NCBI GenBank assembly: GCA_943704425.1
Contig: CALSCP010000883.1
Location: forward strand, 1 to 64,000
Reading direction: 5' to 3'
DNA length: 64,000 bases
Origin: Ministeria vibrans ATCC 50519
Taxonomy: Eukaryota > Protista > Filasterea
In this document: piece after piece, positions 3,708 to 55,002 of the stretch
Layout of the letters: the number at the start of each line of letters is the position of its first letter
How positions within the stretch are numbered: the stretch's first letter is position 1
Made by a program: the position numbers and the translations under genes
Notes under the pieces: model-generated
Database searches by the model: none
Told to the model about the DNA's origin: nothing
What the model saw: only the letters and a program-made list of their open reading frames with translations

Positions 3708-6700
3708 ATGTCCTCTGAACCTGTACACGACAGCACATACGACATATCAACTGATGCCATCACCCTCTCATAATATTTTTTTTCGGTTTGTTTTGATTGC
3801 AGTTTCACGAAGCGTCCGTCGCAGGCGATGTTGATGCTCTGAGGCGGATGTTTGCTGCGACGCCAGGTAAGAACGTGTGGGGAGTTGCCCTGTCGACTAA
3901 CTGTTCTGCTCTTTCTCCGTTGCATCCTCTCGCAAAGGCGTTTTGGACTCGCGAAGTGAAAAAGAACAACTGACGGCTTTTCATTGTGCCGCTCGAGTCG
4001 GACAAATGGCTTCGCTTCGCTGGCTTTCCTCTGTTGGAGCAAACCACATGGCGACGAGTCGAAACGACGGAACTCCGTTTCATTTCGCGGTGCGATACGG
4101 ATTTTTGGATGCGGTTCGCTTCTTTGTCGAGACTTACGGCGAAGGTTCGATCGCACTTTCTCCCTTTCTCCCCCTCTCTCCTCCTCCTCCTCCGCCGCCC
4201 CCTTCTCTTGTTTTGCGTGGATTTACGTTCCGTTCTTAGCTATTACTCGTACGGCTGATCTGAACGGCTGGACTGCGCTTCATTATGCCGCGTGGCAAAA
4301 TCACTACAATATTGCGGCGTACCTTCTTGAGCAAGGCGCAGATCACACTGCCAAAACACAGGGGGGTGCAAGTCCTTTCAATCGTGCCGCATGGAATGGC
4401 CGCCTTCACATTCTTCGTCTCATGTTGAACACACGAGGAAATGGTCTCCTTCAAAAACACACACACTCAAACAAAATAATAATAATATAATTATTCCTTT
4501 TCTTCTGTCACAGGAATGGTGAACCGAAAAAACAACCAGGGTGACACGCCACTGCACGATGCGGCAAGTCGAGGCCACATTGACATTGTGCAGTGCCTTG
4601 TTGGCGAAGCAGGCGCTGACACGACCATCCGGAACAACAAAGGACAAACCCCACTTGATTGCGCGCTCTCAAACTCGTCTGAAGGAAATGAAAAAGTCGT
4701 GTCCTTTTTACGCGTAACAGAAAAAAAAAAAAAAAAAGTCTCTGTATTAAATCGTCATTGCTTGAATCCTTGTAATTTAGAGTGTGTACCAACCGCCGCT
4801 GATTAATCTTCCCCGTTCAATTTCTGAAGGTATTTTTTGACATAAATTTCTTTTCTAATTATATTTTGTATGTTTTGTGTCTGATCATGACTCAAATATC
4901 AGATGCAATTGCTGCGTACGAGGAATTGTTTCGACGTGCATCTGCACAGGGTCACGTGGAGTGCAGTCGTCTCAAGGTGCTTGTGCTGGGCCCCACACTC
5001 GCCGGCAAGACGTCGCTCGTTCGTGCACTCTGTGGCCGTCCCCTCCCAAACCGACTGGAGCGCTCCATTGCCACGCGTTTTGAGCGTGCACGCCTCGTCC
5101 GCAAAGAACAAGACCACCCGGGTCTTTTTGAGGCTGTGCCTCACGACGAACCCCAGCTGGCACGTGCATTTCACTCTCTTTCCCTGCAAGGCGCTCATCC
5201 CCCAGTCCCTCTCCCCTCCTCACCTACTCCCTCTCCCCCCAATACCATTGTCTTCCCTGTCGTCTCAGCCCACCCTCACACTGCCGAAGTTGCCGCTAGT
5301 GCCGCCGCCGCCGCCACCGCCACCACCACCACTACCACTACACCAACAGCATCAGCTACATCTGCTTCTCCTTCCGATCCCATCATGACCTCTATCCGTC
5401 ATCTCCTTCAGACCCAACTGCAAGATTCCAGCCCTCTTCTCGAATTCTTTGATTTCGCCGGTGAGCACAATATCCCATGTTTTGTTTTGTTTTATTTTTA
5501 TTTGAACCTTTATTCTATCGCGCGCAGGGGAAGAGTCCTTTTCTTGCCTTCACAACCTGTTTATGGGTCCCAACTCACTGTACATTCTTGTCATTGATCT
5601 CTCCGTTTTGCACAACGAACGCGATGCACTGCTTCAGTACGACGCACTGAGCCACTGGGCACGCACCATCAGCCACCAGCATCCACGCAACACCACCAAT
5701 CAAGCCAGCAGTGCGACATCGAGTGGCAATGTGACTGATGAGCGCCCCTTCCATGTGATGGTGGTGGCAACGCATGCGGATGTGTTCATTCATGATCCGA
5801 AGAGCCTTGACGAGTGTGCTCGCGCCGTGTTCAGCAGTGTACATGATGCGGTTGGTGCAGAACACTTTGTGTTCCCGCCGCCTTACGAGTCCCACTACCC
5901 CTTCTTTATGGTGGGCAGCACGACAGGCGCGGGTCTTGCCGATGTGAGCACCGCCATGCACTCTGTGGTGTGTCCTCGCCGACTGCCCCTCGCCTGGGTG
6001 TGTGTTCAAGACTTGCTGGGGCGACGCGCTCGTGAGGGTCTTGTGGACCTCACCGTTCCTGTACACCGCCTTGCGTCTGTCGTTCTCAACGTTGATCCTC
6101 TTATCACCATTGGCGACCTTGTCAGCGATGCGCGCGAGATCCGCGAAGGTCTTCTGCCGTACCTTGAGAGCACAGCGGACATTCTTATTAGCCGCCATGG
6201 GCTCCAGCGCGACCGTCACACCATCGATGAGAACGACACAGTCATCTTCAACGTCACCCAACTCATTCTTGCCATCGAGTTGCTCACTTCAGTTGTGCTC
6301 GCCTTTTGGAAGCGCACCAAGAGCACTCGTGCCGACAAGATGGCGCGTCTCGTTGAGCGTGCCGGTCGCCAACGCAACGGTTCGCTCGCAACCCGTCTCA
6401 TTACGGCTCTTTGTCGTGACGGCAACTCATCAGAGGAAGGATTCGATCCGCGAGTTGCCACCTGGCTTATCTGGAGCATCGACAACCTGGGTCGCAGCGA
6501 CGAGGCACTCAGTGACCAAGACCGTGATTTGCTTGCCGGCGCCAATGTGCCCGACCCAGAACGTTTTCTCGGGGTACTCGCCAGCCTGGGACTCGTGCAT
6601 GTCCACCAAAAACGCCTTCTTGTGCCCATGCTACTACCTGAGACCGCCGAATTTGTCACTTCACCCCATGCACGTCCCGTCCGTCTCTTCCTCTACCAGG

Positions 6701-53900: not shown

Positions 53901-55002
53901 ACACGCTGGGCTTTGGACTTGGTATAGAGATAGAGATGAGATGGTCCAATGCTTTCTGCTGACTCTCTGTCCCTTTCACCTTCTCGCTTCTCCTCTCGCA
54001 TCAGCACTCGCTATGCATCTTAAACGCGTTCTTGTGATCGGTCCCGACTGGCGATACAACAGCCAGACTGCCATGTGCAAAGGGGCACGCGCCCTCAACT
54101 GCTTTGCAGCTCCCATCTCCAGCTGTACCCTGGCCGATGTCGGGTGAGCATACAAAAGTCACACTCGCCATGCAAATGCGCCTGACTCTCACACCTCACC
54201 TCTTCTCTCTCTCTCAACTTTGGTTTTCCTCTCTCTCTCTCTCTATCACTTTGTTTCTTTCTCCTTTCTCTCTCTCTCTCAATATATAATTATGTATATA
54301 ATTATATCTATCTCTATCACTTTGTTTCTTTCTCCCTCCTTTCTCTTTCTCCCTCCTCTCTCTCTCTCTCTCTCTCTCTCTCTCTCTCTCTCTCTCTCTC
54401 TCTCTCTCTCTCTTTTAAAGGCATCTTACGCGTGGCGGGAAAATGATTTCAGCAGTGCGCCGTTGGATGCCTTCCACACCTTGACTGTCTTATCCCTTGA
54501 GCCGCTCGCAATAAACTGGCCGTCACGTGAGAATTCGCCACATGTGACAAAACTAGAGTAAGGATCATAATATATTAACGAGATTGCAGCTGTGAGAACG
54601 ATCGGTTAGTTGTTACTCTGTGTGTCCTTCCAATTTCGAAATCTTCTCCCCAGCGAGCACGTCCCAAACACACAGCGTCTTGTCATTGGAGGTGCTGAGA
54701 AGCCGTGTTCCATCTTGAGAGAGGTGGAGCGAGCAAATAACGCCCGTGTGCTCCTTCAGATCGTGGCTAAATCGCTCGTGTTCAACGTTCCACAAACTCA
54801 AATCGGCCGTTTCGCCGCCGGAAAAAATCCACTTCTCACTTGGATGCACGGCCAAACACGATATAGCAAGGATATGGGGAGCGTTAAAAGTCAGTATGGG
54901 GACATCGATCTGATCGCGACCGCTGGCGTCTTGCTGGAATACGACGACGTTGGTTTCGTCGCCGTACGCGAGAAAATCATGGTGGATTTTGGTCAGAGGC
55001 AT
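47947..55002 (-). CDS. WD40 repeats - Roc GTPase - COR - caspase-like (peptidase C14) protein; paralog of 3708-8191
   Basis: WD40 exons at ~54616-55002, 54432-54553, 52312-52440, 52013-52140, 51820-51947 and 51615-51740. P-loop IKLLLLGATMAGKSAL (~51342-51390), DFAG|ED across intron 50671-50744, IVGTHLD, COR motifs. Phase-1 intron 48795-48873 joins in frame to the HLIGHG/CDFCN domain. Linkage of the two 5'-most exons crosses a gap. Confidence 0.82.
52802..52970 (-). CDS. Possible 5' fragment of an unidentified gene (MGEQWQ|GSDTMKVSVGKECKVKVVVEAIGSVV) ending at a gap
   Basis: ATG, one GT-AG intron and an open frame up to the N gap; divergent from the FUT8-like fragment. Confidence 0.35.
53181..54143 (+). 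CDS. 5' half of an alpha-1,6-fucosyltransferase (FUT8/GT23)-like type II membrane glycosyltransferase; truncated
   Basis: Signal-anchor MVGTRWGRFALLAIVSVGLFLG, Pro/Ala stem, then IHKHQHPPDCKDPKLRFVVW..AGLGSDLH..KRVLVIGPDWRY..CFAAPISSC, resembling the FUT8 QNPKDC..GCGYGCQLH..RTLIL..WRY..PVSETC pattern. Confidence 0.6.

Follow-up and report, generated by a model that had tools for sequence, protein, structure and literature searches.

Genes A and B of Ministeria vibrans, two predicted members of a lineage-specific family combining sensor repeats, a Roc-COR module and a caspase-like protease

The window analysed here, which comprises positions 1 to 64,000 of a 145-kb contig (CALSCP010000883.1) in the 29.7-Mb, 2860-contig assembly of Ministeria vibrans ATCC 50519, carries two related genes, namely gene A (+ strand, about 3708-8191) and gene B (- strand, about 55002-47947; Table 1). 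Both are predicted to encode a repeat domain that is followed by a Roc-type GTPase, a COR region and a C-terminal caspase-like protease. Introns were placed as GT-AG pairs giving open, homologous joins, and the predicted exons join into one open frame in each gene, which comprises 1262 codons with a single terminal stop in gene A and 1509 codons in gene B. Homology searches and folding were done on single exons, and the joined coding sequences were checked only for frame and stops.

Genes A and B share a homologous core, which was claimed in a preliminary description of the window and is confirmed exon by exon by BLASTP of the open frames, with 33% identity for the P-loop exon (E 1e-14), 35% over 605 columns for the middle exon (E 2e-92) and 41% for the C-terminal exon (E 2e-58). 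Because, in addition to these alignments, all the motifs listed in that description (FMG..Y..V.DLS, THxD, GRNVLV.CDFCN, etc.) are present in both genes, the homology is real and far beyond chance. The two genes also have two introns in common, which occupy the same position in the same phase (both phase-1); the first lies immediately 3' of the G3 motif DFAG, and the second lies a few residues past the WW motif that closes the COR region. The N-termini differ, as had been described, with Pfam Ank matches in gene A and Pfam WD40 matches in gene B.

The central NTPase of both genes is a Roc-COR module, as judged from its sequence motifs and distant homologues, from its modelled fold and from its nearest neighbours in a protein language model. 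Fifteen paralogues share an invariant P-loop G..AGK[ST] and a conserved RS.ATR switch-I-like segment; DFAG (G3) is invariant, and the Roc-typical G4 motif THxD is invariant in 10 paralogues. Exon 6 of gene A contains the P-loop GPTLAGKT, the switch-I segment RSIATR, a low-complexity insert of ~100 residues and the G3 motif DFAG, and exon 6 of gene B contains the corresponding GATMAGKS, RSVATR, an insert of ~190 residues and DFAG. The Pfam Roc match of the A P-loop exon (18 bits, E 0.0035) is below the cut-off of 27, because Roc is split by an intron and carries the low-complexity insert. This insert is strongly variable in length and content between paralogues, and at one locus (L007 391-3228, contig C1441) it contains an acidic unit of ~16 residues repeated about six times in tandem.

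Remote homology also leads to Roc. A profile of ten middle exons matched only five chains in the PDB, all of them LRRK2 Roc and all weakly (E 0.4-1.2), and the alignment runs over FM..Y..V.DLS and VGTHLD. The P-loop exon alone, used in the same kind of PDB search, retrieved only generic P-loop and GTPase matches, including the C. tepidum Roco protein, and is not specific. When 1.84 billion representative proteins were searched with HMMER, just four matches lay outside the family, all with Pfam Roc (E 2e-5 to 4e-4); two of them carry COR-A and one a C-terminal TIR domain.

The region C-terminal of Roc was assigned from its predicted structure. The AlphaFold2 (AF2) model of the B middle exon is of moderate quality, with a predicted local distance difference test (pLDDT) of 65, and its best 11 Foldseek matches are all Roco proteins, which include LRRK1 (the best, E 6.7e-5), C. 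tepidum Roc-COR and the isolated COR domain 3dpt, M. barkeri Roco2 and LRRK2. VIA-align superposed residues 1-302 of the B exon on LRRK1 705-963, which covers the second half of Roc and COR-A (Z 9.6, root-mean-square deviation (rmsd) 3.0 A, 191 residues), and residues 135-594 on the C. tepidum COR domain 627-940 (Z 9.2-9.6, but with an rmsd of 13.6 A for 221 residues). In the ESM Atlas, the clusters nearest to the middle exon all carry COR-A, Roc or COR-B, with scores of 0.84-0.96. The presence of COR-A and COR-B directly C-terminal of Roc is therefore supported by the predicted structure and its context, and direct sequence similarity does not contribute. The Roc-COR module named in the preliminary description is thus supported by motifs, LRRK2 Roc profile matches and Roco fold matches, with the COR families of Pfam silent. 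No Pfam match to NB-ARC or NACHT, the STAND ATPase domains, was obtained in gene A or B, and membership in the NLR/STAND class was rejected, as the central NTPase is a Roc GTPase.

The C-terminal domain is, according to its motifs and modelled structure, a caspase-hemoglobinase-fold protease with an intact His/Cys dyad. The last exon of gene B matches Pfam Peptidase_C14 (PF00656) with 40 bits against a cut-off of 21.4 (E 3e-10), and 10 of 12 paralogue last exons match the same family at E<=0.01. Exon 8 of gene A alone has no Pfam match and was assigned to the caspase-like domain because it is 41% identical to that of gene B and keeps the dyad. Profiles of the protease paralogues matched Arabidopsis metacaspase-4 and Geobacter GSU0716 in the PDB, where HLIGHG aligns with HySGHG, and CDFCNSG with DSCHSG, of metacaspase-4, so that the His and Cys residues coincide. 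His98, Gly99, Asp148 and Cys150 are invariant in all 12 paralogues, genes A and B included; in the joined models, the predicted catalytic Cys is residue 1382 of B and residue 1143 of A. The C14-like domain that had been described also models as a caspase fold, as the AF2 model of the B last exon (pLDDT 85.4, predicted template modelling score 0.89) is matched best by the yeast metacaspase Yca1 (E 6.6e-10), followed by caspase-9 and GSU0716; there were 344 Foldseek matches at E<=0.001 and, among the matches listed, all are caspases or metacaspases. In the ESM Atlas, the protease lies near bacterial clusters labelled "caspase family", which we treat as a lead only. An invariant Asp stands two residues ahead of the catalytic Cys (D-F-C), like in the metacaspase D-x-C motif, which goes with specificity for Arg/Lys rather than Asp. 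As a guess from this motif, D-F-C suggests that the predicted protease would cleave after Arg/Lys and not after Asp.

Gene B possesses a seven-blade WD40 propeller, in which five blades are strong and two degenerate according to a hidden Markov model (HMM) built from 46 paralogue blades. The gene is interrupted in its 1987-nt intron 2, next to a (CT)n tract, by an assembly gap at 52794-52801, with blades 1-3 on one side and blades 4-7 on the other, all on the same strand and connected by an in-frame GTAAGAT...TTTGTAG join, and its continuity across the gap is supported, not proven. One exact-pattern scan of metagenome contigs gave no match to a contig bridging this gap. The same intron contains a dispersed repeat of ~170 nt at 52900-53070 of the window (possibly from 52802), which adjoins the (CT)n tract and the gap; it has ~970 candidate copies in the genome, and the 40 that were scored are mostly 93-98% identical. 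This repeat resembles a miniature inverted-repeat transposable element (MITE) or a short interspersed nuclear element (SINE).

Gene A most likely possesses about six ankyrin repeats, which are spread across exons 2-5 and matched by Pfam in three of these exons (E 3e-8 to 4e-14). The ankyrin frame meets a stop at 4804-4806 unless it is spliced earlier, for example from the donor at 4772, although several choices would keep the frame. The conserved Roc module is preceded, at a distance of five codons, by an ATG in the same frame at 4887. Gene A could thus be two genes, the first encoding a small ankyrin protein that ends at 4804-4806 and the second a sensor-less Roc-COR-caspase protein that starts at 4887. 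That none of the splice choices is clearly best would fit this arrangement, as would the compactness of the genome, in which two convergent open reading frames terminate 143 nt apart at 39716/39859. However, the best-looking intron, which is predicted to run from GTAATT at 4772 to TATCAG ending at 4902, is reasonable and connects both parts in frame. Other Roco proteins, for instance LRRK2, likewise have ankyrin repeats on the N-terminal side of Roc. Since the stop and the ATG lie just 80 nt apart on the same strand, and all other members with enough upstream sequence carry a repeat domain directly before Roc, a fusion of the ankyrin exons to Roc through the predicted intron is favoured and regarded as quite likely, and the division into two genes as doubtful.

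Gene B provides the firmer link between sensor and switch, because WD40 blade 7, the linker and the Roc P-loop are all located in a single uninterrupted exon (51739-50745), so that the fusion is read directly from the DNA. The protease exon follows the COR exon at a distance of 79 nt in gene B and 181 nt in gene A. In principle, the caspase-like exons could be separate downstream genes that are no part of the Roc-COR proteins, but these short distances come with matching phase-1 introns in A and B, and tblastn placed the protease exon immediately 3' of COR at 25 of the 30 retrieved loci, which represent 24 distinct genes. In the paralogue L022, Roc, COR and caspase are even read through in one continuous open frame. 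Moreover, in the protease exon of gene A the first in-frame Met comes only inside strand 1 of the fold, so that exon 8 is not a stand-alone gene, and the sole candidate ATG of the B protease exon would read through an intron. Lacking a usable start codon and conserved in collinearity with COR, the caspase exon was rejected as an independent gene, an explanation that we regard as extremely improbable. The single chain proposed in the preliminary description therefore stands for the sensor and switch of gene B, whose WD40 blade 7 and P-loop share one exon, and for the collinear protease, but the ankyrin-Roc join of gene A is only a predicted intron.

The two genes belong to a much larger paralogous family. 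Searching the genome, as the preliminary description had proposed for Roc-COR-C14 architectures, gave 82 matches of the B middle exon at about 35-40 loci, far more than two genes, with a stop-bearing copy on contig C85 among them. Thirty loci were fetched, and their N-termini were surveyed mainly from 1.5-kb flanks. The layout of genes A and B recurs in at least 24 distinct paralogues. Upstream of Roc, WD40 blades are present at 16 or more loci, where they occur on exons of ~125 nt spaced ~180 nt apart, and ankyrin repeats are present in gene A only. In a midpoint-rooted maximum-likelihood tree of 28 middle exons, gene A is isolated from the other 27 on a branch of 2.4 substitutions per site, and the others form well-supported subclades, with gene B as a long-branched member of one.

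This position of gene A raises the possibility that it is a decaying, non-functional relic of the family, since its branch is by far the longest in the tree, its best paralogue is only 46% identical, and its exon 8 alone lacks a Pfam C14 match. Yet its eight predicted exons give 1262 stop-free codons in which G1, G3, G4 and the His/Cys dyad are all intact, unlike the copy on contig C85 (2934-4691, - strand), a middle exon with in-frame TAG and TGA stops that is likely a pseudogene. Decay of gene A is therefore considered very unlikely.

Other combinations of modules were also identified in the family. At L021 (1009-3930, contig C2371), the COR region continues in frame into a long tetratricopeptide repeat (TPR) array, and there is no caspase exon; this locus also contains a short run of N and a second copy of a Roc segment, the latter looking like an assembly artefact. 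At L031 (3500-7800, contig C2822, 45.5-49.8 kb), an open frame of leucine-rich repeats (LRR) is followed by a 958-codon frame with Roc (Pfam E 5e-4), NB-ARC (E 1e-8) and DUF7779. This Roc-NB-ARC frame ends at 7431 and the next Roc-COR-caspase open frame begins at 7449, a separation given as 14 nt, and the locus represents one giant gene with two switches or else two genes packed closely together. Because the TPR and LRR-Roc-NB-ARC variants exist besides WD40 and ankyrin, the term "swappable modules" is fair for the family overall. The swappable repeat domain of the preliminary description needs tempering, as it rests on one ankyrin member against at least 16 with WD40, together with these variants, and in the window on the one ankyrin gene.

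Outside this genome, the HMMER profile search of the 1.84 billion representative proteins retrieved one full-length exon product and three fragments. The full-length match is located on a metagenome scaffold of 5539 nt (ENA ERZ23497376 scaffold_1299, sample SAMN09406036), which matches contigs C916 and C1344 along its full length at 97-98% identity, so that the sample contains the same species or a very close strain. Contigs C916 and C1344 themselves appear to be alleles or duplicates of one another. Apart from the three fragments, no Roc-COR-caspase family was seen in other organisms in this search, and no bacterial relatives beyond generic Roc. No relatives of the protease profile were found in a motif-based scan of 185,579 prokaryotic genomes. 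A search with the 1040-aa read-through frame of L022 returned no homologues, although low-complexity words probably swamped the candidate list. As far as these searches reach, the family of about 35-40 genes is lineage-specific.

A similar design has been predicted in bacteria. According to Kaur, Iyer, Burroughs and Aravind (2021, eLife; PMC8195603), bacteria encode proteins with rapidly evolving N-terminal LRRs, an AP-GTPase (equivalent to Roc) and COR, which end in variable effectors of at least 24 domains, including caspase, and can be present as multiple paralogues per genome. The order of repeats, Roc-type GTPase, COR and C-terminal effector is the same in the family of genes A and B. However, the bacterial proteins use LRR sensors and vary the effector among paralogues (PMC8195603), whereas the Ministeria family is eukaryotic, has introns, carries WD40 or ankyrin sensors and nearly always ends in a caspase-like effector. 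Both are computational predictions, and no sequence link between them was detected in the profile search or the prokaryotic scan.

Brown algae also possess expanded LRR-ROC-COR genes, which have one LRR per exon and were proposed to be immune receptors (PMC3341825; PMC11378527), and which respond to other stress conditions as well (PMC11378527). Like these, the present family is an expanded eukaryotic Roco family with one sensor repeat per exon, here WD40 blades on exons of ~125 nt. Unlike the brown-algal genes, in which LRR-ROC-COR is reported to be the sole domain structure, with no enzymatic effector, it adds a protease and uses WD40 or ankyrin.

Among animal Roco proteins, LRRK1/LRRK2, DAPK1 and MFHAS1 have the same core of Roc, COR-A and COR-B, and LRRK1 and LRRK2 are the best structural matches, with 17-20% identity over Roc-COR-A; the G4 motif THLD is as in LRRK2. 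LRRK2 also contains ankyrin and WD40, but its WD40 domain is C-terminal and that of gene B is N-terminal. The low-complexity insert that separates the P-loop from DFAG (~100 to 190 residues) likewise distinguishes the Roc domains described here from those of the animal proteins. The output of animal Roco proteins is a kinase or a death domain, and that of genes A and B would be a protease.

NLRs and Apaf-1, which trigger cell death, are STAND ATPases whose proteases are recruited through adaptor domains. Genes A and B share with NLR/STAND proteins and the Apaf-1 apoptosome a repeat sensor (WD40 in Apaf-1), a nucleotide switch and, by analogy, a caspase death output activated by proximity. They differ in having a Ras-like GTPase instead of the STAND ATPase, and a protease in the same chain instead of one recruited via CARD. 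By this comparison, the family is an analogue of NLR/Apaf-1, not a member of that class, and the resemblance would be functional only. The protease domain itself shares with metacaspases and bacterial orthocaspases (Peptidase C14, clan CD) its fold, HG...C dyad and D-x-C motif, but it is only 10-16% identical to those among the Foldseek matches listed and stands at the C-terminus of a Roco protein.

A full-text literature search found no eukaryotic Roco-caspase, in agreement with the preliminary description, whose author knew of none. The bacterial repeat-Roc-COR-caspase proteins are a predicted precedent (PMC8195603) and temper the novelty. The design principle is therefore known, while the eukaryotic, intron-bearing WD40/ankyrin version with a fixed protease and about 35-40 copies appears undescribed in the literature searched.

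Genes A and B are, in our opinion and with moderate confidence, lineage-specific single-chain repeat-Roc-COR-caspase proteins similar to conflict or cell-death receptors, their function being assigned by analogy with Roco proteins, NLR/apoptosome receptors and bacterial AP-GTPase conflict proteins. Receptor-like traits are the about 35-40 loci in a 29.7-Mb genome and the TPR or LRR-Roc-NB-ARC variants. In such a protein, the repeat domain would bind a trigger, which may be a foreign or damage-related molecule, and on binding the Roc-COR switch would change its nucleotide state and, through COR, its oligomeric state. This shift would bring together or free the protease domains, which could then be activated by proximity and cleave targets, leading to a defence or cell-death response.

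Several points weigh against this assignment. All splice junctions of genes A and B are predictions, and the ankyrin-to-Roc junction of gene A has several in-frame options together with the separate-gene alternative. Gene B spans the assembly gap at 52794-52801, which is bordered by a (CT)n microsatellite and a dispersed repeat. Pfam COR-A and COR-B gave no match to the middle exon at E<=0.01, the COR call draws on a model of moderate confidence (pLDDT 65), and Roc is interrupted between the P-loop and DFAG by low-complexity sequence of ~100 residues in gene A and ~190 in gene B. The recent paralogue pair L006/L009, which is one pair only, is a mosaic of 86-100% nucleotide identity with no clear excess of divergence in WD40. 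Finally, family size and architecture suggest conflict biology by analogy and do not show it.

The same architecture could also serve endogenous signalling or regulated proteolysis, such as cytoskeletal, trafficking or developmental functions, rather than the sensing of non-self or cell death. Where their roles are known, Roco proteins of eukaryotes function in trafficking and signalling, and metacaspases also have functions other than cell death. The lack of clear WD40-specific divergence in the L006/L009 pair would be in line with such a role, as is the response of brown-algal ROCO genes to other stress (PMC11378527). However, the about 35-40 lineage-restricted copies with long branches, the lack of detectable orthologues in 1.84 billion proteins, the module exchange with NB-ARC, LRR and TPR, and a layout that parallels the bacterial conflict proteins (PMC8195603) characterise conflict genes more than core signalling genes, and an endogenous role is regarded as the less favoured of the two and as unlikely.

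A wider proposal would be that the receptor-like family constitutes a eukaryotic class of immune or death receptors, in which Roc-COR replaces the STAND ATPase, a caspase-like protease is built in, about 35-40 genes exchange sensor modules, and the whole has an origin separate from, or far later than, that of the bacterial Roc-COR-caspase proteins. By analogy with the systems compared above, we put this forward tentatively, as a possibility that falls somewhat short of probable. If true, it would provide a eukaryotic sensor, GTPase switch and executioner protease in one polypeptide, and a large, diversified receptor repertoire in a small protist genome. The Roco family, which is best known for LRRK2 and Parkinson's disease, would be tied to an ancestral role in conflict and cell death, and the bacterial AP-GTPase conflict systems would be extended into eukaryotes. 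As well, it would offer a simple system for the control of an attached enzyme by the nucleotide state of Roc-COR, with a protease read-out that is easier than that of a kinase. Should the family be engaged in ordinary signalling, it would still represent an unreported Roco architecture.

Table 1. Predicted exons and other features of genes A and B, in window coordinates
Feature	Position	Strand	Content and basis
Gene A possible exon 1	3708..3722	+	ATG and 4 codons; uncertain, weak donor GTACAC; frame check
Gene A exon 2	3803..3866	+	Start of ankyrin array; splice candidates, frame check
Gene A exon 3	3938..4144	+	Ankyrin repeats; Pfam Ank families E 3e-8, splice sites
Gene A exon 4	4240..4443	+	Ankyrin repeats; Pfam Ank E 2.4e-12, splice sites
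Gene A exon 5	4514..4771	+	Ankyrin repeats and Lys-rich linker; Pfam Ank E 3.9e-14; 3' end uncertain
Gene A exon 6	4903..5460	+	First half of Roc; Pfam Roc 18 bits, E 0.0035; donor 5461
Gene A exon 7	5528..7183	+	Second half of Roc (G4 THAD), COR-A, COR-B; 35% identical to B exon; splice sites
Gene A exon 8	7365..8191	+	Caspase-like domain (HLIGHG His, CDFCN Cys) and stop; 41% identical to B, dyad aligned
Gene B exon 1	54617..55002	-	N-terminus and WD40 blades 1-2; Pfam WD40 E 1.7e-13, blade HMM, splice site
Gene B exon 2	54430..54552	-	WD40 blade 3; Pfam WD40 E 8e-9, blade HMM E 5e-19
Gene B intron 2	52443..54429	-	1987 nt; (CT)n/(GA)n microsatellites, assembly gap, dispersed repeat
Assembly gap	52794..52801	.	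8 N, inside gene B intron 2; continuity across gap not proven
Gene B exon 3	52314..52442	-	Degenerate WD40 blade 4; weak blade-HMM matches, no Pfam match, in-frame splice
Gene B exon 4	52013..52138	-	WD40 blade 5; blade HMM E 1e-20, Pfam WD40
Gene B exon 5	51821..51946	-	WD40 blade 6; blade HMM E 1e-21
Gene B exon 6	50745..51739	-	WD40 blade 7, linker, first half of Roc; one open exon; blade HMM E 4e-12; donor
Gene B exon 7	48874..50670	-	Second half of Roc (G4 THLD), COR-A, COR-B; AF2 model, Foldseek, VIA, ESM Atlas
Gene B exon 8	47947..48794	-	Caspase-like protease and stop; Pfam Peptidase_C14 E 3e-10, AF2, Foldseek

Another assembly gap, at 11108-11118, touches neither gene and was rejected as relevant to them, being located in a C-run 2.9 kb past the stop of gene A and 37 kb from gene B. 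The neighbours of the two genes in the window include EGF/GPS/receptor-L-domain proteins, a BTB-CAP-Gly protein and a SHIP-like phosphatase. At 14901-19649 (+) there is an open frame of 1582 codons, which has no Pfam match at E<=1e-5, and the region shows strong strand bias, with GC skew up to 0.28 and AT skew up to 0.32. Finally, large EGF-repeat-rich frames with a GPS motif and a receptor L domain, which are adhesion-receptor-like, were identified at 28496-35634 (+) and 9760-10662 (-); a 7-N gap (35613-35619) lies at the end of a 1400-codon frame within the former.

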